64,000 nt of DNA from Mobula hypostoma (Eukaryota). Position 1 is the stretch's first letter. Every line of letters starts with the position of its first letter. The translations under genes and the position numbers were made by a program. Location of the stretch: positions 31,372,001-31,436,000 of the forward strand of contig NC_086101.1 in NCBI RefSeq assembly GCF_963921235.1, read 5' to 3'. Under the pieces are notes generated by a model. The model searched no databases and was not told the origin of the DNA. It was given only the letters and a program-made list of their open reading frames with translations. Positions 4,729 through 23,037 of the stretch are shown piece after piece.

Positions 4729-5622
4729 GAGGTTGAGCACACCTTATCCAAAATGCATGGGGTCAGAAGTGTTTGCGATTGCGGATTTTTTTGGATTTTG
4801 AAATATTTGCATCCATATAATGAAATACCTTAGGGATGGGATCCGTCTCAACACAAAATTACATTTACATTACATTACATTTACAGTTTACATATATATA
4901 CATATATACACACACTGAAGGTAGCTTTATATAATATTTTAATAACTTTGGACACAAAACAATAATGTATACGTTGAACCATCATAAGTATAAGTATACA
5001 TATCAGTATGTTGGTTACCCAGGTGGACAGTCAGTGGTTTTGGCATCTCCATCATTCCCGACTCTGAATTACTGTGCTGCTGGTAATCAATCTTCGTCTT
5101 ACACTTGTTCATCACAGATATGAACTGATACAGACATTCATGTGTTAGACTTTCATCACCAATGAATCTTGGCGATCTCATCGATGAATTTTGCTGCTGC
5201 TTCATGATCAGCAGAAACTTTATCACCACAAAGTATTAAAACAATTAATGTAATCCCTTTTCTTAAATTTCTGCAACTAGCCTGTTGAATATTCACAATT
5301 GCTTTCAATTTTCAATTCATTGTGGTAGCTCTTTGCTTGCTTCATGATCAGCATACTGTTAAGCTGCATATGTTCACTCCAGCAACGATTCCACTCTTGC
5401 AATACATGATGGAGATCTTCATTTTTCATTTTATGGAATGTTTTTCATTACATATGTGAGGTCACTTCTCAGCACTGTCTGTGGTGCACATCACCTGGGA
5501 TCCTTCCCAGAGCCTCGTGGAATTTTCCATCTGTGATATCATATCAGCATTCAAAAAAATTTCAGATACTTTATCCTGAGGTTTTCAGATTCTGGAATTT
5601 CAGACATGGGGTACTTAACCTG
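4729..5622 (-). mobile_element. Tigger/pogo-type DNA transposon remnant
   Basis: Terminal inverted repeats (G/C)AGGTT(G/A)AG(C/T)AC..., with TA on the left, and a decayed CENP-B-type HTH coding region. Confidence 0.75.
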
Positions 5623-8600
5623 TTATATTTCTTTTCTTTCTTTTCTTTTCTCTAATGACAGCCTTGCTATCTCTTATCAGTCAGGGTTCTCTTGAACTTA
5701 GTATGCTTATCCCTTACTCTGTGTATCTGAGTGCAGTGGTTATGTTTGAGTGTATGAGTACATGCCTGTGTGTGTATATATGCGCTTGTGTTGGAGTGGG
5801 ACACAGAGAGATGACAGTCACCAGCCCCTCCCCATCTCCAGGTTGTGGTTCCCAGTCCCACAGCCCCGGCAGGCTCCACACAGCAAGGAAGGAGGGGGCA
5901 GGGCCACTGTCTTCCTGTTGCTGTGGGTCAGTGTGTTCCAAAGATAAAACATCTCATGGTCAGTGTTGGGGAGAGCAGGACAGTCCCACTGGCTCCTGCA
6001 CCAGTAGCTGCCCCAACCAATGTCACTGAAGCAGGTCCCCTGGTGATGATTACACTGCTGTTTATGGGGTCTTGCTGAGTGCAGAATTGCTCCACTTCAC
6101 AATCTCAACATCAGCTCTCACCCCTCTGGGGTGTACAACAGGGGGTGGGGGGTGTGAGTGTGAAGAGTGTGAAGGGGGTGTAGTAAGCACCTTGATTTTT
6201 AAACTGCCGCTGAACGGTGGTGGAGCAATGGGTCAGGTATATCTCCAACCTCACCTTCCTACGTCCCAGTAACCTGTCAACCCGGTAAACTGTCACCCCG
6301 GTAACCTGTCACTCTGGTAATTTTTCAGCCTGATACCTATTTATCATCTTGATAAACTCTTCACCTCTATAAACAATCCATCCACCACTGCCTTAAAAAT
6401 TCCTAAAGCCTCTGCTTCCACCATCCTTTGAAGGAGTGAGTTCCAGTGATTTTCAGATTGGCAGAATTTCAGATGGTGATGAGGAGACGTGCATGAGAAT
6501 CACAGAGTATCTGGTTGAGTGGTGTCACAGCAACAACCTTGTACTCGACATCATTAAGTAAAGAATTTATTGTGGACTTCAAGAATGTAGGACAAGGAAC
6601 ACACACCAGTCCTTATCAAGGGATCAGAAGTGGAAAGAGTGAACACATTCAACGTCTCTGAGGGTCTTTCAGAATAAGCTGCAGAAAGTTTTAAACTCAG
6701 TCTGCTCCATCATGAGCACTAGCTTCCCCAGGATCGAGAACACCAGCAAAAGGTGACTCCTCAGAAAGGCAGCATCCATCATTAAGGAGCCCCATCACCC
6801 AGTACGTGCTCTCTTCTCATTGCTACCATCAAGGAGGAGTTACAGGAGGGTGAAAACACACACTCACCATTTCAGGAACAGGTTCTTCCCCTCCACCATC
6901 CGATTTGTGAATGAACAATGAACCTATGATCACTTCTTCAGTATTTTCCCTCTATTTTTGCACTACATATTTAATTTATTTTTATATGTATTCACTTCTT
7001 ATTGTAACTTACAGTGTTTATTATTATGTATTGCCTTGTACTGCAGCCACAAAACAATTTTCATGACATATGCTGGAGATATTAAACCTGATTCAGATTC
7101 TGATTCTGACTACTTGACGGATCCCTCTCAGATCCATACAGCCAGTGCTCTCCACAGTTTATGAATGATCCAGTGATATGGTTGGATCATGCTGTGCACA
7201 GCGGCCCTCACTGTCCAGAGCTCAGGCCGCAGTCTCTGAGAGACACTCCCTGCTGAACGGAACTGTGGATAAAACATTGACTACAACAATTTCAGACAAC
7301 CAGCCATTCCAGTTTGTTCTGGGAGCAGCCGGTTGTGATGTAAAATCACCCACTATAGTTCAGGTTTCTTCTCCCTGCAGCCACTATCTGACATGGTGCC
7401 GATTACCAAACTTCTCCTTTATTTAAGATTTCCAGCATCTCCAGTGTTATCCCTCTCACAATTCCAGCTTTGTTATTTACCCCTCTCCCCTGCCCTCCTT
7501 CACATTGAGTATTTACCCTCACTCTGACACTGAAAGGCGTCCCTGCAGATCCAGGACCTGAGAAGCAATCCCTACCCAGCAACAGATGACAAACTGTAGT
7601 TGTTCCATTTCATTGGCTTGCTTCTCCATTAAGGTCCCGTGGTTTATAGATGTCAGTCAGTCTGTTTCTCTGCTGCTTGTAGTTGGGGATTTTACAGCCA
7701 GCCCCTCCCCCTCAGAGTCATATTGTCATGGAGTTATACATTACAGAAACAAGACTTAGGTCCAAATCGTCAATGCAGATGAAGATGCCCATCTAATCTA
7801 GTCCAATTTGCCCATATTTGCTCTATATTGCTCTCAATATTTTCTATTCATCTGGCTGTTCAAATGTCATTTAAATATTATTATTGTACTTGCCTCAGTC
7901 ACTGCCTGTGGCAGATTATTTCATAATTGCTCCTCTCTGTTTAGAGAAGTTGCTTTTCAGGTCCCTTATAAAACTTTTCTCTCTTAAGAGAGAGAAGAGT
8001 TAAACTTATGTTTACACTTATGTCCTCTAGTTTTTTTGTTTTCTTTCCCTTATCCTGGATAAAACTGTATGCATTCACCCTATCTATCCAAACAGGTTCA
8101 ATTTCCTGCTTGCCAGTATGTCAGAAGATCTGCCTGGGCCCAGCACATTGAACCAATCATGAAGAAGCTCCATTCATTTGGAATTTGAGGAGATTTATGT
8201 GTCAGCAGATTTCCATAGGTGTACAGTGGAGAGCATTCTGACTGGTTGCATCAGAACCTGACGTGGAGGAGCCATTGCCAAAGATTGTCAACTCAGCCAA
8301 CTCCATCATGGGGACAACCCTCCCCACCATTGAGGACATCTTCAAGAAGCACTGCTTCAAGATGGCAGAATCCATCATTATGCACCCTCATCAAAGGAGA
8401 AGTCTGGTAATGACAGCATAATGACATGTTCTCATTACCACCATCAGGGATGGTAGTACTGTATCTTGAGACCTACATACATCAATTCAAATATAGCATC
8501 TTCCCCTCTGTCATCAGAATTCTGAACATGTGAATGTGACACCTTCCCCTTCTTTGCACTCTTTATTTGTTTTGTAATTTATAGCAGTGTTCTGCCTTTC

Positions 8601-9680
8601 TACTGTAATACCTGCTACAAAACAAAATTTTTCACTTCATAAGACAGTGTTATTAAACCTGATTCCAATTCTGATTTGCCCCTTACGACTATAACATCAC
8701 CGCTCAAACTCCTTCCGTGCCCAGTCTGCTCAAACTCACCCTGTAACCCAGGCCTTCAAATTCCAACAATATTTTCATAAACCTGTTTGAAATTTTCCCT
8801 CCAATGAGGTTGCCAAAACTGTGCAAGTATGCCAGATGAAACCTCACCAGCACTTTTCAAAGTTCAAAGTAAATTTATTATCAAGAATACGTCTAAGTCA
8901 CCAAATACCACCGAGATTCATTTTCTTTCAGACATTCAGAAAGAACAAAGAATCAATGAAAACCTACACACAAAGACTGACAAGCAACCCTTGTGTAAAA
9001 GAAGACAAACTACACAAATACAGAAAAGACAAATAATAATAAATTATCAAGAAAGTAAGTAACAGGAAGAATACGAATTGTAGAATTCTTGAAAGTGAGT
9101 CCACAGTTTGTGTTCAATGATCATTTCAGTGTTGTGCTGAGTGAAGATGTCCACGCTGGTCCAGGAGCCTGATGGCTGAAGGATAATAACTTTTCCTGAA
9201 CAGGTGGTATGGGACTTGATGCTCCAGTACCTCCTTCCTGATCATAGCAGTGAGAAAAGATGTCCTGGATGCTGGGGATTCTTGATGATGGATGCTGGCT
9301 TCATGTGGCAGTGTTCTTTGTAAAAGTGCTCAGTGGTGGGGAAGACTTTCCTGTGATGGACGACACTGTGGCCAACATTTTTTGCAGACTTTTCTGTTTT
9401 TGGCCACTGGTGTTTGCTTACCAGGCCATGATGCAACCAGTCAAGATACTTTCCACTGTGCATCTATTGTAGTTTGTGAAAGTTTTAGATAGCATGCAGA
9501 ATCTGTGCAAACTCAAAGTCAGTTTGTACTTTGTACAACTGCAACAGAATGTCATAACACCAAAACCCAATGCCCTCTAGTCCCTAATCCAAACACCTCC
9601 CCAACCTCTCCCTTTCATTCCCTGAAACCATCTATAGCACAGCCTCCTCTTTCTTTCCCCCGGTCCCTCCACCTGGATAT
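4830..9680 (+). repeat. Segmental duplication, copy 1 (partner about 12410-15545)
   Basis: Colinear blocks 4830-6320/12410-13910, 7990-8560/13910-14400 and 8690-9680/14500-15545, including a shared Tigger-to-unique-flank junction. Confidence 0.85.
7554..7707 (+). promoter_or_regulatory. S-X-Y module A plus kappaB-like block
   Basis: GGACCTG (S, 7554), CCCAGCAACAGATG-AC (X1/X2, 7575), ATTGG (Y, 7612; 37 nt from X start), TTTATAGA at about 7643, GGGGATTTTAC at 7685. Confidence 0.8.
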
Positions 9681-10803
9681 CCCTGTTGTTTCTGCTCTTC
9701 CCTGCTCCTACTCCGATTCCTCACAGCTGAATCCAGTATCCAGTAAATTTAGGACTATTGATGTATGTAGAGATTTTCACATGCAAGTTTGCTGATGCAT
9801 GCGGTAAAAATGGCAGATGGCATACTTGCCTTCATCAGTCCAGGCACTGAATATAACAGCTAACCAGGCATTTTGTAGCTGCATAAAACTTTGTTTAGGC
9901 CACACATATTATGAGTAATCTGTGCAGTTCCAGTCACCCCATCACAGAAAAAATGTGGGGGTTTCAGAGAGGGTACAGAAAATGTTCACCTGGATGCTGG
10001 CTGGATTAGAGAACATTAGCCACATGGAGAGATCGGACAAACTCTGGAGCATCAGGGTCTGAGCACTGATCCAATGGAAGTATATGAGAGACATAATGAG
10101 AGTTTATGAGAGACATAACTAGAGTAGATAAAAGTCTATTTCCCAGTGTGGAAGTGTTAAATACTAGAAAGCACAGGCTTAATGTGTGAGGGGAGGATGT
10201 TTAAACAAGACTGCAGTGCAAGGTTTTTACACAGACAGTGGTTAGTGTCCTGAATATCGGTAGATAATTTTCTGGCAAGATGACAGTGCGACTGGTTGCA
10301 GCAGCTTCTGTCAGCTAACAAAAGGCACTATCGATCTACCTACACATATGTCTAATGATTGCAGGATCCTGCTTTATGTTAAGAACACAGTACTGTAGAT
10401 CTACACCATCAGCGAGTTGCTCACTGGCGGAGAGAATGAAAGAGTTGCACAACATGCTGCTGCCTAATTTGATGGCAGCTTACAGTCTAATAGTGAGTGG
10501 CTGTCATGGTTGCTTTTCTTGTGAGTGCAATTAACAATTAATTCTGCTCTCCTCAACTGATCAATGCGTTTTCTCCAGATGATATCAGATGCAATCTCTA
10601 AAGTATACAAGAGAGGCCTAGTGCTCTTCTTAATCTTTCAAAGTACCCAATTTTGATCACCTCTGTAGTCCCTCACCAGGACCTCTTGACCAGGAGTGAA
10701 ACATTGAACCTCCTTGTTTCAGGAGCTCTCAATTTGCTTAGATGTTTCAGGCCAAGATGTCTCTGCAGATCCGAAGTCAGTGTAAAACATCCCTGATCTC
10801 ACT

Positions 10804-10948
10804 GGAGCTTCAAAAACAAAATCTACCCAGCAACAGGTTACAAACTGTGACATTGCCATTTCATTGGCTTGTTTATGAACCTGTGGTTAGAGTGGCTGCG
10901 GTCTATTTCTCTGCTGCTTGTAGTTGGGGATTTTCCAGCCAACCCATC
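10804..10948 (+). promoter_or_regulatory. S-X-Y module B plus kappaB site
   Basis: GGAGCTT (10804), CCCAGCAACAGGTT (10826), ATTGG (10863; 37 nt), GGGGATTTTCC (10926). Confidence 0.75.
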
Positions 10949-11439
10949 CCCCAGTGTCCCATCTGAACTGAACTCCCTCTGGTTCCCATTTCCATCAGGT
11001 TTGACGACCTGAAGGTGCTGGGGATCTGATTTGGAGAGGTTGAGGCATTAACAAGTTTTCCTGGAGCAGATGGGAAAGGTCAAACAAATAGTTAAGTCAA
11101 TGGAAACGGCATCCACTGCCCTTAACTGGGAAGAACTTGTTTATCAATCGTGGTGTGCTCTCAGGGCTGCTGTACTTGGCGCTGATGTGGCCTGTTCCCC
11201 ACTGCTCTCCCTCGGTAATTAGTAGAACCATCTTTTGCTTCAACACAAAATGTGTCCAATGGGTCATGTAATATTTTGTAACTCCAATACATAAAAGTTA
11301 TAAAAAACACAGGGTGGGGGTTAATGTGTGTACGTTCATTTTTACTTTTAGAGATGCGTGCGCATATGATGTAGTGGCACAATAACGCATGCCATTCATG
11401 TACTTTTACATACAGTATAACCTGTGATAAATTATTTCA

Positions 11440-12415
11440 ACAAACAAAGATGTTAACTGTGGAGGATTTCTTACTCTTGTGGGATAACATCTTTGGCATG
11501 AGAGGCTTATAGCTGTGAAGCAATCACAGGTTCTCGGGCATTTTCCACAGTAGTTGTAAGAGTTGTGTCTGGGACTGTAGGAATGGTTCTCACACTCTGG
11601 TCACCTTTCCTCTCTTATAATTAACTCTGCTCTCCTCAACTGATCAATATGTCCTTCCAGATGATATCACATGCAATCTCCAAAATATACAAGAGAGGTC
11701 CTGTTCTCACTTTAATCTTTCCTAGTACCCAATTTTGATCACCTCTATAGCCTCTCACCAGGACTGTTTGACCAGGAGTGAAACATTGAAGCTCCTTGTT
11801 TGAGGAGCCTCAATTCACCTCAACTGTTTGCCCTGCATAATCCTTCTGAGATTGGGGGTTTGAGGAGATTCAAGCTGGTGAGCTGTTGGTTGTGGAGTGT
11901 GCTACATTGTAATGTGGAAGGAAGAAGTTGGAAAGCTTCTGGTTCAGTGTTAGTGTCGTGACTTCAGCCAAAATTCTTTAGACTCTGGACAAATCTCTCC
12001 ACAAAGCCATTTGCAGCTAGGTCCAGATGTAATATACCTCATTGTATCTATTTTCAGGAATGACTGAAACTGTTCTGTAACATACTGTGGTCTATTTTCA
12101 CTAAGTACTCCGGAACAGCAGACCCAGAGAAGAGGCTTCTTAACACATCAACAGTATGCAAGGCTGTAGTGGAGGATATTGTGAACACTTCTGGCTACTT
12201 TGTAGCTGCATTCACTACTACCAAGAAATCTGAGCCCATGAATTGTCTGGCAAAACCCACATGGATCCTCTGCTCGGGTAATGCAGGCCATTCCCAGGGA
12301 TGGAAAGAAGCTTCTCTTGGGCAGCTTTTGGACATGTTGGCATCCCAAACAGTGAATGGTAAACTGCTCAATCTGATGATCTATCCCAGACCTCCAGACA
12401 AAGCTTTGAGCCTGG
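11440..12415 (-). mobile_element. Gypsy/Ty3 integrase relic; its 3' part is also duplicated at about 10260-10745
   Basis: QAQSFVWRSGIDHQIEQFTIHCLGCQHVQKLP (integrase Zn-binding region) and a C-terminal WRKRIDQLRRAE-like motif. Confidence 0.75.
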
Positions 12416-13214
12416 GGATGGGATCGAACTCTAAACATGAAACCCATTTACACTGCATTTACAGCTTACACATACACGCTGAAGGTAGCTTTATATAATA
12501 TTTTTAATAATTTTGACCATGAAACAATAATGTATACATTGAACCATCAGAGAGCTGAGCTGTCACTACCTTCGCTACCCAGATGGATGGTCGGTGGTTG
12601 CTTGGCATCACCATCATCCCGACTCTGAATTTATGTGCTATCGGTAAGCACTCTTTGTCTTACACGTTTGTTCATCACACATACAGTATGGCCTAATGCA
12701 GCCAATCACATGTCAGATTTTCATCGCCAACAACCTTAGCAACCCCATCAATGAGTTTCTCTGCTGCTTCATGATCAGCAGATACTTTATCATTACAAAT
12801 CTTTAAAAAAAAATTAATGTTGCACCTTTTCTTAAATTTCTGCAACCAGCCTGCTGAACATTCACAATTTCTTTCAATTTTCAATTCATTGTAATGAACA
12901 AGCTCTTTGCTTGCTTCATGATCAGCATACTGTTAAGCTGCATGTGTTCACTCTGACACTGACGATTCCTCTCTTGCAATACACGACAGAGATCTTCATT
13001 TTTCACTTAATGGAGTGCTTTACTAATTTCCATTAACTTCTGTTCATTACATATGTGAGGTCACTTCTCAGCACTGTCTGTGGTGCACATCACCTGGGAT
13101 CCTTCCCAGAGCCTTGTGGAATTCTCCATTTGTGATATCATGTCAGCAGTGAAAGAAATTTAAGATTTCAGTGGTTTTCGGATTTTGGAATTTCAGATAC
13201 AATGGCTTAACCTG
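12410..13214 (-). mobile_element. Tigger-type remnant, duplicated copy of 4729-5622
   Basis: ORF 12693-12884 (SAGWLQKFKKRCNI...ADHEAAEK, CENP-B HTH); right TIR CTTAACCTG. Confidence 0.8.
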
Positions 13215-13742
13215 TTACATTTCTTTTCTTTTCCCTAATGACAGCCTTGATATCTCTTATCAGTCAGGGTCTCCTGAACTTAGTGTGTCTACCTCTTACC
13301 CTGTGTATCTGAGTGCAGTGGTTATGATTAAGTGTATGAATACGTGCATGTGTGTGTGTGTTTGTATTGGAGTGGGACACAGAGTGATGACAGTAACCAA
13401 CCCCCTCCCCATCTCCAGGTTGTTGTTCCCAGTCTCTCAGTCCAGTCTGGCTCCACACTGCAGGGATGCCGGGGCGGGGGGGGGGGCACTGCCTTCCTGT
13501 AGCTGTGGGACTATGTGTCCCACAGCTACGGGACATCCCACGGTCATCCAGAAACATCCCACGTTCATTGCTGGGGAGAGCAGGACAGTCCCACTGGTTC
13601 CTGGACCGGTGGCTGCCCCATCCAATGTCAGTGAAGTCAGTGCTCTGGTGGTGATCACACTGCTGTTCATGGGATCTTGCTGAGTGCAGAATTGCTCCAC
13701 TTCAGAATCCTGTCATCAGCTCTCATAACCACTGGGGTGGGG

Positions 13743-13746
<4 letters not shown>

Positions 13747-13788
<42 letters not shown>
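13747..13788 (+). repeat. (GT)21 microsatellite
   Basis: Read directly; copy 1 has only a degenerate GTGA/GTGT tract here. Confidence 0.95.
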
Positions 13789-13791
<3 letters not shown>

Positions 13792-15545
13792 GGGGGTGTA
13801 GGAAGCACCTTGATTGGTAAACTGCAGATCAATGGTGGTGGAGCAATGAGTCAGGTATATCTCTAACTTCACCTTCCTACACCCCAGTAACCTGTCACTC
13901 TGGTAACAGAAGAGATAAACATATGTTTAAACTTATGTCCTCCAGTTTTTTGTTTTCTTTCCCTTACCCTGGATAAAACTGTGTGCATTCACCCTATCTA
14001 TCTGAGCAGTTTCAAGTTCCTGCTTGTCAATATGTCAGAAGATCTGCCTGGGCCCAGCACATTGAACTAATCATGAAGAAGGCATGCCAGCTCTACTTCA
14101 TTAGGAATTTGAGGAGATTTGGTGTGTCAGCAAATTTCTACAGATGTACAGTGGAGAGCATTCTGACTGGTTACATCGGAACCTGACACTGCAAAAGGTC
14201 GTCAACTCAGCCAAATCCATCATGGGCACAACCTTCCCCACCTTTGAGGACATCTTCAAGAAGCACTGCTTCAAGATGGCAGAATCCATCGTCATGGATC
14301 CTCACATTCCAGAACATGCCCCCTTCTCATTACCACCATTAGACCCACATAGAATGATTCAAAAATAGCATCTTTTCCTCTATCAGATTTCTGAGTCCAT
14401 GAATGTTATGCCCTTCTCTTTATTGCACTATTTATTTTGTGATTCATAACGTGCCTTTGTACTGTAACTCCTGCTGCAAAACAGCACAAGGAAGAAATTC
14501 CCAGCCTGAACAATCTCACCCTGTAACCCAGGCCTTCAGATTTCAGTCACAAACAAGAGAAAACCTAAAGGTGCTGGAAATCCAAGCAACACACACAAAA
14601 TGCTGGAACCATCTATGGAAAAGAGTTGCTTCAAATTTCAATGGTATTTCCACTACTTTGTTCCTCTAATAAGGTTGCCAAAACCTGTACAAGTACTCCA
14701 GATGCAACCTCACCAGCACTTCTCAAAGTTCAAAGCTCTAAGCAAATGTATTACTAGAAATACGTCGATGTCACCTGATGTACCCTGAGATTCATTGTCT
14801 TTCAGGCTTTCACATAGAACAAAGCACAACAGAATCAATGAAAACCTATGCACAAAGACAGACAAGCAACTATTGTGTAAAACAAGACAAACTATGCAAA
14901 TACAGAAAAGACAAATAATAATAATAAATGAACAAGTAATTAAGTAATAGGAAGAATATGAATTGTAGAATCCTTGAAAGTGAGTCTATAGGTTGTGTTC
15001 GATGATCAGTTCAGTGTTGTGCTGAGTGAAGATGTCCATGCTGGTCCAGGAGCCTGATGGTTGAAGGATAATAACTTTTCCTGAACTGGTGGTATGGGAC
15101 TTGAGGCTCCAGTACCTCCTTCCTGATCACAGCAGTGAGAAGAGAGCATGTCCTGGATGCTGGGGGTTCTTGATGATGGATGTGGTTTTCTTGTGGCAGT
15201 GTTCTTAGTAAATGTGCTCAGTGGTGGAGAGGACATTTCCTGTGATGGACTGCACTGTGTCCAATGATTGTATAGGCTTTTCTGTTCTTGGCTTCTTGTG
15301 ATTGTTTGCTTAATAGGCCATGATGCAACCCCTCAGGATTCTTTCTACTGTGCATCTATAGTAGCTTGTCAAATTTTTAGATGGCATGACAAATCTGTGC
15401 AAGCTCACAGAATGTCTTAACACCTGTACTCAATGCCCTCTCCTCCCTAATCTAAGCACCTCCCAACCACTACCTTTCATTCCCTGAAGGCCTCCTAATT
15501 ATAGCACAGGCTCCTCTTTCTTCTCCCCTGGTCCCATCACCTTGA

Positions 15546-18500
15546 ACCCAAGGGTGACCCATATTCTTGAGGACAGGTTTGTTAGTTCTCTTGGGGAGGA
15601 TTTAAACTATTTGGCAGGGTGATGAGAACTAGGATGAAGGGACTCAGGATAGGAAAGATGGCAAAAAAAGATAGCATGCCCTCAAATTGTCAGGAAGAGC
15701 AAGCAGATGATGGGACAAAGTTGCAGCCAGTAGGATATGAGTCAGTGCATTCATGATGCAGAATCAGAAAGAGTAGCAAACACAGCACTCTAAGTGTTGT
15801 ATCTCAATGCATGGAGTATAAGAAATAAGGTGGATGATCTTGCTGTACTATTACAGATTGTCAGGTATGATGTTATGGCCATCACTGAATCGTGGCTAAA
15901 GGATGGTTGTAGTTGGGAGCTGAATGTCCAAGGCTACACATTGTATCAGAGGGATAGAAAGGTAGGCAGAGGGGGTGCCATGGCTCTGCTGGTAAGGAAT
16001 GGCATCAAATCAGTAGAAAGATGTGACATAGGATCGGAAGATGTTGAATCCTTGTGGATTGAGTTAAGAAACTGCAAGGGTAAAAGGACCCTAATGGCAG
16101 TTATATACAGGCCTTCCAGTAGTAGCTGGGATGTGGACCACAGATTACAATGGGAAATAGAAAAGGCGAGACAAAAGAGCAATGTTATGATAGTCATGGG
16201 AAATTTCAACATGCAGGTCGATTGGGAGAATCAGGTTGGTAATGGATCTCAAGAGAGTGAATTTGTTGAATGCTTACGAGATGGCTTTTTAGAGCAGTTT
16301 GTCATTGAGCCTACTAGAAGATCAGCTATACTGGATTGGGTGTCATGTAATGAACTGGAGGTGATTAGAGAGCTTGAGGTAAAAGAACCCTAAGGAAGCA
16401 GTGATCACAATGTGATTGAATTAGTCATAGTATAGTCATAGTCATACTTTATTGATCCCAGGGGAAAATCGGTTAAATTCACCTTGAAATTAGATAGGGA
16501 GAAAGTAAAGTCTGATGTAGCAGTATTTCAGTGGAGTAAAGGAAATTACAGTGGTATGAGAGAGGAGTTGGCCAAAATAAATTGGAAGGAGATGCTGGCA
16601 GGAATGACAGCAGAGCAGCAATGGTGTGAGTTTCTGGGAAAAATGAGAAAGGTGCAGGATAAATGTATTCCAAAATCAAAGGAAAACTGAAATGGCAAAA
16701 TAGTATAACTGTGGCTGACAAGGGAAGTCAAAGCGAATGTAAAAGCAAAAGAGAGGGCCTACAACAACGTAAAAATTAGCAGGAAGACAGAGGATTGGGA
16801 AGCTTTTAAAAACCTACAGACAGCAACTAAAAATTAGGAAGAAAAGATGAAATATGAAAGCAAGCTAACAAATAATATCAAAGTGGACAGTTAAAGCTTT
16901 TTCAAGTATGTAAAAAATAAAAGAGAGATCTGAGTGGATACAAGACCACTAGAAAATGAGGCCGGAGAAATAATAATGGGAGACATGGAGATGGCAGATG
17001 AACTAAATGAGTATTTCACATCAGTCTTCTCTGTGGAAGACACTAGCAGTGTGCGATATGTTGAAGGGTGTGAGCGAAGAGAAGTGAGTGCAGATACTAT
17101 TATAAGGTAGAAGCTGCTCAAAAAGCTTAAAGACCTAAGGGTATAAAAGTCACCCGGCCCAGATAAACTGCACCCTAGGGATCTGAAAGAGGTAGCGGTA
17201 GAGATTGTGGAGACATTAGTAATGATTGTGACGAGAATACACATAAAATTAAGATGTTTGCTGGCCTAGGTTAGCATCAGTGACATCAGCAAGTGATCTG
17301 CCACCTGCCCTCAGGGGAAGGAGAGATAAGGAACAATGAAGCAGCATCTGGAGATGTGTAATGAAGGGACGTGGGAGAGAGAGCTGTCTGGAGCGGCTCC
17401 CCCTTTGAACACTGAACTGTTTGAAGTGATGGACAGGCGATACCCCAGCAGGGGGATAAAAAGGGACCGGTTCGCTAAGGCAGGACACACGCCACCCGAG
17501 GTAACGAGACCCTGGAAGCGGTGCGCTTCTCACGAGTCGGTGAGAGGTACCAGACAACGGCCAGGGTGGAAAGGTACGATCAGCGGGAACCCGGTGTGTG
17601 TCCGCCCTTGCCTGGGTGCCGGGTTCACTGCAGAGGATCGACCGCATCTGGAGGAGGGGTCACAGTCGGTGACCTCAGCTGACATCACCAAGGACCCGCC
17701 CAAAAGCTGCTTGTGAGCCATCTCGCCGGTCTGTGAGTGAAGCCGTGTCTGAATGATCAGTTGTTCCTGTTCTATCTCTCTCTTCCCCCACGTTGTCCAT
17801 CGCCATGGCAACGATTACTGCGAACTGAACTACTAAACTGGACTGAACTTTGAGTCACTTTGAAATTTGGTCATTTACCCCTAGACAACGATAGAGCTTG
17901 ATTGATGCTGTTATCTTAATTCTGTGCACATGTGTGTTTATCATTGCTGAACTGTTGCATTTATTATCCTTTCGATTACTGTGTTGCTTATTTCTTTAAT
18001 AAAACTTTCTTCGTTCTAGTACTCCAGACTCCAACTGAGTGATCTATTTCTGCTGGTTTGGCAACCCAGTTACGGGGTACGTAACATGATCTTTTAAAAA
18101 TCATTGGATTCTGGCAGGGTGCCAGAGGACTGGAAAATTGCAAATGTCACATCACTGTTTAAGAAAGGAGGAAGGCAGCAGAAAGGAAATGATAGACCAG
18201 TTAGCCTGACCTCAGTGGTTGGGAAGATGTTGGACTCAATTGTTAAGCATGAGGTTATGGAGTACGTGGTGACACAGGACAACTTAGGACAAAGTCAGCA
18301 TGGTTTCCTTAAGGGAAAATCTTGGCTGAAGAACCTCTTAGAATTCTTTGAGGAGATTACAAGTAGGATAAGTAAAGTGAATGTAGTGGATGTTGTATAT
18401 TTGGACTTTCAGAAGGCCAAGCTAAGAGCCCATGGTATTACAGGAAAGTTACTGGCACGTTTAGAGCATTGACTGATTGGTAGGACGTTGAGAGTGGGAA

Positions 18501-19500
18501 TAAAAAGATCCATTTCTGGTTGGCTGCCAGTGACCAGTGGTGTTCTGCAGGGGTCGGTGTTGGGACTGCTTTTTATGCTGTATATCAATGATTTAAATGA
18601 TGGAATAGATGGCTTTGTTGCCAAGTTTGCAGATGATAAGAAGATTGGTGGAGGAGCAGGTAGTGTTGAGGAAACAGGCAGGATGAAGAAAGACAGATCA
18701 GCAGAATGGGGAAGGAAGTGGAAAATGAAATATAATGTTGGAAATTGCATAGTCATGCACTTTGGTAATAGAAATATATGTGCAGACTGTTTTCTAAACG
18801 GGAAGAATATCCAAAAATCTGAGATGCAAAGGGACTTGGGAGTCTTTGTGCAGAACACCCTAAAGGTTAACTTGCAGATAAAGTCGGTGGTGAGGAAGGC
18901 AAATGTAATGTTAGCATTCATTTCAAGAGGTCCAGAATAAAAGAGCAAGGATGTAATTCTAAGGCTTTATAAGGCACTGGTGAGGCCTCACCTTGAGTAT
19001 TGTGAACAGTTTTGGGCTCCTTATCTAAGAAAAGATGTGCTGGCATTGGAGAGGGTTCAGAGGAGGTTCACAAGGATGATTCCAGAAATTAAAGGTTTAT
19101 CATACGAGGAACGTTTGATAGCTCTGGGTCTATACTCGCTGGAATTTAGGAGGATTGGGGGGAGAGGGATCTCATTGAATCCTTTCAAATGTTGAAAGGC
19201 CTTGATAGAGTAAATGTGGAGAGGGTCTTTCCTCTGGTGGGGAGTCTAAGACCAGAGGACACAGCCTCAGAAAAGAGGGGCATCCTTTATGAATAGAGAT
19301 GAGAAGGAACTTCTTTAGCCAAAGAGTGGTGAATCTGTGAAATTCCTTGCCACAAGTAGCTGTGGAGACAAAGTCATGTGGTATATTGGATACAGGGAGA
19401 AGGCAGGAGATTGGGGCTGAGAGGGAAATGGGTCAGCCATGATGAAATGGTGGAGTAGGTTCGATAGGCCGCATGGTCTAGTTCTGCTCCTATATCTAAT
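15546..19500 (+). mobile_element. CR1-type LINE (APE and RT ORF2 with stops/frameshifts), interrupted by a solo LTR and an about 50-bp antisense LINE tail at about 16425-16475
   Basis: YLNAWSIRNKVDDL...AITESWL (APE); HGFLKGKS, YLDFQKA, GVLQGSVLG, KFADD (RT); 3' tail. Confidence 0.93.
17227..18086 (+). mobile_element. Solo LTR (860 bp)
   Basis: TGTGAC...GTAACA termini, 4-bp TSD TGAT, AATAAA near 17998, many CpGs retained; the CR1 reading resumes across it. Confidence 0.9.
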
Positions 19501-19737
19501 GATCAAATTGCACAATCCTAACCCCACCTTAGCAATAGGACATTATTGATCACCTCATGCACTACCAAGAAGTTGGCTCTGTAATGTTGCACAGAGTTTA
19601 TCTAGTGTAATTTGTCTAGTAGAGTTTGTCTAGTATAATTTATGCTCTGGACATTGTGAGTCCACATCCCTGTGATGTTGCTACAACCATTTCATTGTAG
19701 TTCACTGCACTTGTGCACATGTCAATAAACTTGATGG

Positions 19738-19890
19738 GAAGCCTCACACACAAACCCTATCTGGCAACAGGTGACAACTTGTAGCCACACCACTTAATTG
19801 GCATGTTTATCCCACGTTAACCCTGCAGTTCAAGAGGCTGCAATCTGTTTCTCTGCTGCTTGTAGTTGAGGATTTTACAGCCAGCCCCTC
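19738..19890 (+). promoter_or_regulatory. S-X-Y module C plus degenerate kappaB-like block
   Basis: GAAGCCT (19738), TCTGGCAACAGGTG-AC (19760), ATTGG (19797; 37 nt), GAGGATTTTAC. Confidence 0.7.
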
Positions 19891-21319
19891 TCAGTCCCAT
19901 ATGAACAGGAAACCTCTGCTTCCCAATCTTGAAAAACACACCAGCATCTCTGGAACAAAGTCCCATCCACTACACTCCCACTCTTCGGTTTCCTGAGACA
20001 TCCCCATTCCTAGGACAATCATTGACCCCTCTTTTCCTTCTCTCTCCCACTAGTATTCCCTGTCTCCTGCCCTCCCCCATCAGATCAATCCTACAACCCC
20101 ACACTCTGTCCTTTCCTCACAATTTAATGCAGTTGCATCTTTTACAGTAAGAGATATTTAGACAGGCACATGGACAGAGAGAATGGAGGGATATGGATCA
20201 TCTGCATGTAGATGGGGTTAGTAGGATTGGTTTCATGGTCAGAATTGACAAGATATGCACAACGCCCTGATTCTCTGGTGTACTATTCTCACCCATTCCC
20301 ACTCCTCCATCTTTTCCTCATTATTCAACTCCACACCAAGTCAACTATACCCTCCCCTCCATCATCCCCAAGACAAAAAGATTCTGGACTGAGTGGCAGC
20401 AATTGGGATTAGTACAAACAGTTCCTGGATAGTTGGCATGAATATGATGGGCTGAAGGGCCTGTTTCTATGCTATGCGACACTATGAACCTCTAACTGTG
20501 AATTCCTTCAAATAACCAGCCTTTCCAGTAGATGACCAGCTGTGATGAAAGATCACCCACTGTAACAAGTTCAGGTTTCCTCTCCCCACAGCCGCTACCT
20601 GCTATGCTGGGTATTACCCGCATTCTCCTTTAATTCCCATTTCCAACATCCTGCACTATTGTCCCTCTCATTGCCCCAATGTTGTTATTTACCCCTCTCC
20701 CCTGCTCTCTATCCCCTCATCTTTTTACCCCTCTTCCCAAAGCTGCATCCACAGCTGAGGGTGGGGAAAAATGAGAAGAGATGGTGAATTTCCTGACTAT
20801 CTGTCAGATCCCAAGAAGAAAACTTGTTGCATCACAGACTGATTGGGCAATTGCAACACCGCTGAATGGAAGAGGTTAGAGAAAGTAGAGGACACAGCCC
20901 TCCCAGCACTCACATCTACAGGAGGCATTGCCTCAAGAATGCAGCATCTGCCATCACCAATCCCTACTGTTTAGCCTGTGCCTTCTTGCCACGCTACCTT
21001 TGGATAGGAGACACAGAAGCCTGCAGTTTCACGCCACCAGGTCAGAAACAGCTACTTCCCTTCAACCATCAGGTTCTTGAACCTACCGCACAACCCTATT
21101 GCCATCTCAACAATGGAAGTCTATGGCCCACCTCTTTAACTATCAGGAAACTGTCTCTGGTATTTTTTTCCCCTCACTAATGTCTTGATTTGCACAGACT
21201 TTATGCTTCAGTGCCTGCTACAATTTATATATAATTTATGTTGTACCTGCATGGTTGTGATGCTTCTGCAGTTGTTTCGTTGGCCCTGTACTTCACTGCA
21301 CTTGACAATAAACTTCATC

Positions 21320-21470
21320 AAGGCTTCAAAAAGAAACCCTACCCCCCAACAGGTGACAAAACTAGCCACACCATATAATTGGCTTGTTATTGCATGTTAA
21401 TAACTGTGGTTTACAAGAATGCAGTCTGTTCTCTACCGCTTGTAGTTGGGGATTTTCTAGCCACACCCCC
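21320..21470 (+). promoter_or_regulatory. S-X-Y module D (degenerate X) plus kappaB-like block
   Basis: AAGGCTT (21320), CCCCCCAACAGGTG-AC (21342), ATTGG (21378; 36 nt), GGGGATTTTCT (21448). Confidence 0.6.
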
Positions 21471-23037
21471 CCTCCAGTGTTTCACACATAGACACTAGCA
21501 GTTCCTGGAATGAAGTCCCATCTATTCCAATCCTCCCATTCCCTGAAATAACCTCATCTGTCAGATTGGCACTGGTCCCTAATACTGCTTCCTTGTTCTC
21601 CCCTACTATCTAGTCTCTGACCCACACTCATAGTTCATTTACCTCACCCTCTATCCTCACACTTTAATTCAGTACACAGTAAACTGAAGAACCCTTAAGA
21701 ACCTTGGTGGACACTGGGGTCTTGGGCTGGAGGGGCTCAGCTCACTGACAGTGTGACCACACAAGCTGACAGAGTGGTAAAGGAGGTGGACAGTATACTT
21801 GCCTTCATTGGTCAGGGCAAGGATGCAGTTGCAGCTGTATAAAACTTTGTTCAGGCACCATTGGGAGCATTGTGTAAAGTTCCAGTCACTGCATCAGAGG
21901 AGTAATTACTGCTGGAACTGATTTATTATTATTGCACAGTTTGCTGATGTGTAGTGAATAGCTTGTCTTGTATACAGTTCATACAGATGAATTCATTGCA
22001 TGGAAGAGAGAATGTTTCAAAGTACATTTATTATCAAATTATGCATGTGGTATACAACCCCACGTTTCATCTTTCCACAGGGTTGGCCTCCAGTTCCAGC
22101 CCTGATGAAGGGTCTCAGCCTAAAATGAGAACTGTGCTCTTTTCCATAGATGCTGCTTGGTCTTCTGAGTTCCTTCAGCACTGTGTACTGCTTCATCTTT
22201 CCACAGACAGCCATGATACAATCCATTCAAGAAAACATCAAATACCCAAAAACAAATCATACAAACCACAGAAAAGCAAAAAAAAAATTATAAAACATGA
22301 AACCACATTGAAACAGTCCAAGGACACTAGTTTTATTTCAGATCAATCTGGTGATGTCTCATTGACTGCAGGCTGCAGAGCCCGCCCACCCCAACCAATC
22401 ACAAAAAACAATAAAAATAAAAGTAACCAGAAATCAAACACATTGTCCAATCTACAAACCATTTTTGATTAAACTTTTCCCAAAACCCAGGGCTCTGGTA
22501 GCATTAAGCAAGACCAGTCAAACACAGGTCCCTTCCTCCAGAAGCGGTGACTGGTCCCTCATTCACATGCAGACATCTTCCTCCAGGAGCAGCACATAAG
22601 AGACGGGCCAAATGCAGGCAGATGGCACTGGACACCATCTCACCTTCTGCTCTCATCTTCATTGATTTCAATCTTGTTTGATGATTTAATCAGTCAGGTC
22701 AGCAAGAAATGGAGTTGATCATGGGGCTCACACCCCATCTCCAGGCTTCTTGACCTTCAGGCCCCACACTACTTGAAACCTCAAACTCCCTCAGACAGCA
22801 AACCACCAGATCACTCAATTGCCTGAAAAACACCATCAATGTCCAGAGAGAGCATGGAAGAGGTCCAAAAGGATGTTGCCTGGTTGGAGATTTTTTTTTT
22901 TTTGCTGAGAAGTTGAACAAACTTGCTTTGGTTCCTCTTGTGTGAGAAACTGACAATATACCTGACAGACATCATATTACAAGAGGTGAAGATTGTATAG
23001 ACAGTTTCCGAGGATCGAACTGACAAATGCTACAGGG

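Follow-up and report, generated by a model that had tools for sequence, protein, structure and literature searches.

Four paralogous S-X-Y-type modules 3' of a class II beta gene of Mobula hypostoma as candidate ancient distal enhancers

A 64,000-nt stretch of Mobula hypostoma DNA (assembly GCF_963921235.1, contig NC_086101.1, positions 31,372,001 to 31,436,000 of the forward strand; hereafter the window, in which positions are counted from its first letter) contains four copies of a composite unit 3' of a class II beta gene of the major histocompatibility complex (MHC). Each copy consists of a series of S, X1, X2 and Y boxes of the type found in class II promoters, followed by a further conserved block. 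On balance, these units are probably ancient distal enhancers of the S-X-Y type that were amplified locally. The main new result is the deep conservation of the unit, which sequence matches also place beside the class II beta genes of whale shark and skate. The occurrence of the same element at the same place and in the same orientation in these two species makes an old distal regulatory element the most likely explanation, rather than junk or a dead promoter. The four Mobula modules (M1 to M4) are laid out as follows.

7540-7715, plus strand: module M1, with an S-like box at 7554-7560, X1 at 7575-7585, X2 (TGAC) at 7587-7590, Y (ATTGG) at 7612-7616 and the block at 7660-7700.
10790-10955, plus strand: module M2, with an S-like box at 10804-10810, X1 at 10826-10836, TTAC in place of TGAC at 10838-10841, Y at 10863-10867 and the block at 10901-10941, which carries GGGATTTTCC at 10927.
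19725-19895, plus strand: module M3, with an S-like box at 19738-19744, X1 (TCTGGCAACAG) at 19760-19770, X2 (TGAC) at 19772-19775, Y at 19797-19801 and the block at 19843-19883.
21305-21478, plus strand: module M4, with an S-like box at 21320-21326, X1 (CCCCCCAACAG, its RFX half-site degraded) at 21342-21352, X2 (TGAC) at 21354-21357, Y at 21378-21382 and the block, which has a 1-nt deletion, at 21424-21463.

A search with regular expressions recovered the layout described in the initial annotation, that is, four modules with X1 starting at 7575, 10826, 19760 and 21342 and ATTGG lying 37, 37, 37 and 36 nt from the X1 start in M1 to M4, respectively. S-like heptamers (GGACCTG, GGAGCTT, GAAGCCT and AAGGCTT) lie 21-22 nt 5' of X1, and TGAC follows X1 in three of the four modules (M1, M3 and M4), while M2 reads TTAC. 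The RFX half-site, expected in a CCYAGCAAC-like context, is AGCAAC in M1 and M2 and GGCAAC in M3, all within the RGYAAC consensus; the CCCAAC of M4 fails it. X2 is a TGAC half-site at best, and the full TGACGTCA or TGCGTCA is present in no copy, whether in M1 to M4, whale shark or skate. The Y box ATTGG (inverted CCAAT) is present in all four Mobula modules. By their motifs, the Mobula units agree with S-Y modules in X1, Y and the X-Y spacing; X2 is represented by a half-site and S weakly. The conserved block starts 33-43 nt past Y and is 41-47 nt long. Among the Mobula copies, the NF-kappaB consensus GGGRNWYYCC is matched exactly in M2 only, with one mismatch in M1 and M4 and two in M3.

The four units are true paralogues and no chance matches to a motif. 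A 27-nt probe from the block behind Y matches the four module sites only, where no match is expected by chance. A four-unit nhmmer profile run on the window finds the same four modules with E values of 1e-48 to 1e-51 and no fifth copy, the next match having an E value of 0.8. According to sensitive self-BLAST, what the copies have in common is about 140-190 bp each (7566-7711, 10806-10988, 19714-19925 and 21297-21480), and homology among the copies stops about 15 nt 3' of the block. Short units of about 170 bp with such sharp limits could also be expected of an old, low-copy interspersed repeat, that is, an exapted or fossil mobile element in which the likeness to S-X-Y is coincidental or captured and which has no specific tie to class II genes. 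Copy number in the genome was estimated from the depth of contigs of the species' own DNA run, at a likeness of at least 80% on positions 7000-12000 and of 88% on positions 19600-21600. The module bins have the lowest depth within 7000-12000 (11.5 and 40.5, compared with about 8 for one contig), and the M1 bin reaches 11.5 compared with 8.05 for its own contig, while the transposable element (TE) flanks of the modules reach 10^3-10^5 in the same 80% mapping. At 88% likeness, M3 is covered by its own contig and a cross-mapping M2 contig only, and the depth of 3.7 over M4 corresponds to its own contig alone. The initial annotation was to be abandoned if the modules proved to be part of a genome-wide dispersed repeat; this single-copy depth at both levels of likeness rules out an abundant or young family, a test that is blind to a small old family with less than about 80% identity.

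The surroundings of M1 bear on the same question. Of two copies of a composite high-copy repeat, the first (4903-6322 plus 7991-9677) is split by a 1.67-kb stretch (6323-7990) within which M1 lies; in the second (12467-15545), the corresponding point is 13906/13908. The stretch also contains a 3' fragment of a long interspersed element (LINE). Such an interruption would suit a mobile unit, but the borders of the stretch showed neither terminal repeats nor a target duplication. Further evidence against an old repeat is that the remaining 50 kb of the window and two further class II loci contain no additional copy, that each of the three independent occurrences has an inverted orientation and a position 3' of a beta gene, and that a match to the human X box combined with the exact X-to-Y distance is hard to obtain by chance. 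Overall, a repeat origin appears improbable. Amplification of the array through a 7.6-kb tandem duplication (4.9-9.7 kb and 12.5-15.5 kb) was considered as well and rejected. The parts common to these two regions are high-copy TE sequence and therefore give no evidence for a segmental duplication carrying the modules.

Conservation within the unit was measured as the number of alignment columns that are invariant across the four Mobula copies, from 5' to 3':

S heptamer: 2 of 7 columns invariant.
Spacer between S and X: 7 of 14 columns invariant.
X1: 8 of 14 columns invariant.
X2: 5 of 7 columns invariant.
Spacer between X2 and Y: 5 of 17 columns invariant.
Y: 6 of 8 columns invariant.
Spacer between Y and the block: 10 of 42 columns invariant.
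Block: 33 of 41 columns invariant.

The block differs strongly from the spacer that precedes it (33/41 compared with 10/42; Fisher P = 2e-7) and is 82-96% identical between copies. Pairwise identity in the spacers is 0.45-0.56, close to that of aligned unrelated sequence. These near-random spacers suggest that the copies are old and that the kept parts were retained in each of them. The deepest core of the block that is common with whale shark, GTTGGGGATTTT(C/A)C, resembles a kappaB/NFAT site. The Mobula copies are 63-73% identical to each other and 53-57% identical to the whale shark copy. Since they are closest to each other, they either multiplied after the shark-ray split or exchanged sequence among themselves.

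Four other class II beta loci (two from whale shark, one from the skate Rhinoraja longicauda and one from Stegostoma) were searched for the unit. At one whale shark locus (L001), positions 13-174 of the four-unit profile align with the minus strand at 37866-37688 (E 4.5e-12). A plus-strand beta gene (10001-30080) ends 7.6 kb before this copy, which is inverted to the gene. The S-X-Y half (E 2e-4) and the block half (E 3e-4) of the profile match the site separately, and each of these matches ranks best or second-best in the 283 kb searched with the two halves. In the skate locus (L003), the S-X1-X2 part has a minus-strand match at 29520-29473 (E 8e-6), which is again inverted to a plus-strand beta gene (10001-19706) and lies 9.8 kb beyond it; transposon-like sequence follows X2, and the remainder of the unit is missing. 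The X1 half-site is GGCAAC in whale shark and GGTAAC in skate, and both have the TGAC half-site. The whale shark copy also fits GGGRNWYYCC exactly (GGGATTTTCC). Thus, in Mobula, whale shark and skate, which represent three elasmobranch orders, the element is found a few kilobases 3' of the beta gene and inverted. When positions 1-26 kb of the window are compared with the whale shark locus, only TE copies and one coding exon of the beta gene match besides the unit. With no other non-coding match, the unit stands out from the non-coding DNA around it.

Some further features of these loci were noted. In skate, a consensus kappaB-type site (GGGGATTTCC) is present at 29549-29540 on the minus strand, about 20 nt 5' of the S-like box, so the kappaB-like motif lies 5' of S in skate and 3' of Y in Mobula and whale shark. 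The skate locus carries two beta-2 exons about 10 kb apart, at 2169 on the minus strand and 12736 on the plus strand; their opposite strands indicate two beta genes arranged head to head. One NCBI gene model at this locus spans 160 kb and looks chimeric.

The initial annotation left open whether the modules form an array like a locus control region or are the promoter remains of deleted class II genes, and a maintained regulatory element is now favored. As promoter relics, the units would have no present function; they would be decaying traces of duplicated class II genes that later suffered deletion or became overrun by TEs. Their layout is indeed that of a proximal class II promoter, and the many insertions of LINEs and short interspersed elements (SINEs) nearby could have erased the exons. 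The degraded X1 and the 1-nt block deletion of M4, the loss of TGAC in M2, and a divergence from close relatives that is no lower than in the flanks would also fit decay. However, neutral remains would not be expected to stay one composite, with the same order and orientation, in Mobula, whale shark and skate while the surrounding non-coding DNA lost its similarity. The equivalent place and orientation of the composite in whale shark and skate is one reason for preferring a maintained element to dead promoters; the survival of the boxes, while the spacers of the paralogues decayed to near-random identity, is another. In addition, the strong conservation of the block next to such spacers is not expected of relics, and the exons of dead genes should be as detectable as their promoters, yet none were found. 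Homology of the unit to beta-gene promoters was examined and rejected, as the whale shark and Stegostoma promoters show no significant profile match; the lack of homology to the real whale shark promoters also speaks against relics. A relic origin is therefore regarded as improbable. In the promoter of the whale shark gene at L001 (9500-10000), an X1-X2 sequence (GGGCAACAGATGACG) lies about 410 bp before the ATG, and the best profile match there has an E value of 2.6. A SINE-like insertion parts this X1-X2 from an ATTGG run that ends in a Y box and TATAAA before the ATG.

The Mobula beta gene lies to the right of the modules on the opposite strand, with the following parts inside the window.

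24793-51000, minus strand: class II beta gene P0001 of Mobula hypostoma, encoding 273 amino acids, with a gene range of 41,899 bp in GCA_963921235.1.
About 50956-50690, minus strand: beta-1 exon.
45182-44898, minus strand: beta-2 exon, 100% identical to the NCBI Mobula hypostoma class II beta-like protein P0001.
About 37770-37650, minus strand: transmembrane exon.
25511-25464, minus strand: cytoplasmic exon.
About 24816-24793, minus strand: last coding exon, with the stop codon.

The leader exon and promoter of this gene are located about 2.7 kb beyond the end of the window. Its introns are filled with TEs and measure 5-13 kb or more. The beta-1 domain of P0001 has no match to Pfam MHC_II_beta (PF00969) in the precomputed list, despite clear orthologues in sharks and rays. 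The modules lie 3.3 kb (M4, the nearest) to 17 kb (M1) past the stop codon, and their inversion relative to the beta gene, stated in the initial annotation, was confirmed; their S-to-Y polarity faces the 3' end of the gene. The remaining DNA around the modules is mostly LINE and SINE debris. A plus-strand LINE copy occupies 15794-19641, with pieces of endonuclease and reverse transcriptase open reading frames (ORFs), the latter at 18098-18937; the copy terminates in a 14-nt microsatellite (19597-19641), about 80 nt short of M3.

As had been claimed, there is neither a leader exon nor a class II ORF behind any module; Pfam, tblastn and a C1-set motif scan agree on this. The ten plus-strand ORFs 3' of the modules belong to no Pfam family. 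With 54 class II beta chains as queries, tblastn found a single minus-strand gene and no beta pseudo-exon behind the modules, and the C1-set motif scan returned only the beta gene's own beta-2 exon. Class II alpha exons were excluded by the motif scan and Pfam only, without an alpha query. No conserved ATG or leader was found 3' of the block, so the units differ from a proximal promoter, in which a leader would lie within about 150 nt of Y. A coding function of the block was ruled out by a stop codon in M3 and a frameshift in M4, and a structured or known RNA by the lack of an Rfam match and of a conserved fold (-5 kcal/mol, no covariation). Two RNA contig sets, both of which contain the beta-2 exon, show no coverage of the modules or of the unique sequence beside them; as contigs from unknown tissue, they constitute weak evidence. 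At the level of sequence, both the orphan status of the S-X-X2-Y-type modules (from motifs, paralogy and the lack of a gene behind them) and their local multiplication, as proposed in the initial annotation, are upheld.

These results also bear on the explanation that the units are real promoters of plus-strand non-coding or unannotated transcripts, which would converge on the beta gene, might run antisense through it and would account, by their transcription, for any regulatory effect. The block would then occupy the position of the class II transcription start or 5' untranslated region. Its distance of 33-43 nt past Y is the usual distance from Y to the start in class II promoters, and the S-to-Y polarity faces the 3' end of the beta gene in all copies of all three species. 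Masternak et al. are also said to have found, in 2003, extragenic transcription at mammalian class II control regions. On the other side stand the negative RNA contigs, weak as they are, the absence of conserved RNA structure, and the lack of any conserved sequence, ORF or splice-compatible exon past the block. Orphan promoters are thus considered rather unlikely, and this explanation overlaps with enhancer function.

Contigs of two close relatives were also compared. Organism I has contigs for all four modules, including a 204-nt contig over M1 (7554-7757) with 8 differences and an orthologous contig over M2 (10806-11048) with 15 differences. In organism B, M3 is covered by a contig at about 98%. 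One organism B contig joins sequence up to 19690, left of M3, to the start of M4 at 21297, with 34 other letters between them, while the same organism also has contigs over the DNA between M3 and M4. The joining contig may be an M3/M4 recombinant, a deletion allele or an extra paralogue.

Several observations weigh against the interpretation of the units as ancient S-X-Y-type enhancers. The modules diverge from close relatives about as much as their flanks do (4-10% compared with 5-7% in organism I, and 2.3% compared with 2.3-5% in organism B), a comparison of little or no power because the divergence is only 2-6%, with most differences unlisted. Within the S to Y region, boxes are not significantly better conserved than spacers (20/34 compared with 12/31; P = 0.14), and the S heptamer is conserved no better than the adjacent spacer. 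The initial statement that the boxes were kept while the sequence between them drifted therefore holds for the X core, Y and the 41-nt block; it does not hold for the S heptamer, and the contrast inside S to Y is weak. The most conserved part is the block and not the S-X-Y boxes, so the main function of the element may lie outside the enhanceosome. Individual copies are also incomplete: M2 is without TGAC, and the RFX half-site of M4 is degraded. Y reads AATGG in whale shark and is absent from the skate copy; the full S-X-Y layout is thus conserved within Mobula only. No copy is present within 10 kb of the second whale shark beta locus or of the divergent Stegostoma beta locus. Finally, the scans covered the window and class II loci, and the unit may belong to an old, diverged low-copy family that spread beyond MHC loci.

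An ancient distal enhancer remains the preferred explanation, and the following mode of action is proposed. The unit would be a composite cis-regulatory element of about 170 bp, in which an MHC-type S-X1-X2-Y platform is followed by the conserved block of 41-47 nt. If the mammalian model applies, the RFX5/RFXAP/RFXANK complex would occupy the X1 half-site (RGYAAC), CREB/ATF the TGAC half of a cAMP response element (CRE), and NF-Y the ATTGG. Once assembled, this enhanceosome would bring in CIITA or a co-activator resembling NLRC5, and the unit would act at a distance and independently of orientation on the nearby class II gene or genes, in the way of the human distal S'-Y' enhancers. The factors bound, the enhancer activity and the target gene are all predicted by this analogy with mammals. 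The element is presumed to be old, with one copy in whale shark and skate, and to have multiplied to four in the Mobula lineage. A more specific version is put forward tentatively, as a possibility and no firmer. According to it, a composite distal enhancer with S-X-Y and kappaB/NFAT-like parts already lay 3' of class II beta genes before the shark-ray split and was retained there, and the devil-ray arrays flank an alpha/beta pair and point inward. By our own estimate, this split took place about 250-300 million years ago.

Mammalian class II expression relies on one stereotyped DNA platform, which serves promoters as well as a small number of distal enhancers. To our knowledge, the age of the distal layer of class II control has not been studied, and the literature searched contains no paper that deals with S-X-Y modules or the control regions of class II genes in cartilaginous fish. 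As a candidate for an ancestral element of class II control, the unit is concrete and can be tested. Its copies, with and without Y, TGAC or a kappaB-like match, form a natural series of variants for dissecting the needs of the enhanceosome, and the unit can serve to mark class II regions when elasmobranch genomes are annotated. If a composite enhancer of pre-split age were confirmed, it would be older than any other MHC class II locus-control element known, and long-range control by the enhanceosome would be as old as the class II system.

The units resemble the HLA-DRA proximal promoter in an X1 near CCTAGCAACAGATG with a half-CRE directly after it, an inverted CCAAT 37 nt from the X1 start and an S-like element about two helical turns upstream. 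The distance from S to X is about 2 nt shorter in the Mobula units than in HLA-DRA. In HLA-DRA, X and ATTGG are 37 nt apart when two printed fragments (PMC4806502, PMC4501648) are joined by 5 further nt. Of the first 14 nt of the HLA-DRA X probe CCTAGCAACAGATGCGTCA (PMC4806502), 13 are shared by the X1 of M1, and the HLA-DRA Y primer reads CTGATTGGCC (PMC4501648). Spacing is tightly constrained (PMC4374748, PMC1802633) and a critical determinant (PMC4374748). Unlike the HLA-DRA promoter, the Mobula units have no leader exon or transcript behind them and only a half-site for X2. Unlike proximal class II promoters in general, the unit has no homology to the actual beta promoters of whale shark.

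The S box decides between CIITA and NLRC5 (PMC4374748); in the elasmobranch units, it is too poorly conserved for either to be assigned. A Rel/kappaB-like GGGGATT together with an SXY module is shared with the MHC class I promoters, in which enhancer A (kappaB) and SXY are read by NLRC5 (PMC4374748). In class I promoters, however, kappaB and the interferon-stimulated response element (ISRE) lie 5' of S, whereas the block of the Mobula units lies 3' of Y (in skate, GGGGATTTCC lies 5' of S). X-box-like sequences of the XL9 type in the human class II region are likewise intergenic X-type sites with a proposed architectural or regulatory role (Gomez 2005; Majumder 2008, PMC2292219). Unlike the Mobula units, XL9 is a CTCF-bound insulator without a full S-Y layout; no CTCF-type motif was noticed in the units, where no search aimed at one was made.

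The closest counterparts are the distal S-Y enhancers of the human class II locus and the Ii gene, which are gene-less, are bound by RFX and CIITA and function in both orientations (PMC1802633). Examples are DRAe upstream of HLA-DRA, modules #2, #4, #6 and #8, and Ii S'-Y' (Masternak 2003, Krawczyk 2004, in PMC1802633). Like these, the elasmobranch units are gene-less S-X-X2-Y modules located kilobases from promoters, several per locus and some inverted, with the box order and X-to-Y distance of the proximal promoter. They differ in being mutual paralogues with an extra, better conserved block of 41-47 nt past Y, in lying 3' of a beta gene rather than upstream of an alpha gene, and in having a Y that was dispensable over evolution (it was lost in shark and skate). 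The units have the build of S-Y modules, and they most likely function as the distal modules do.

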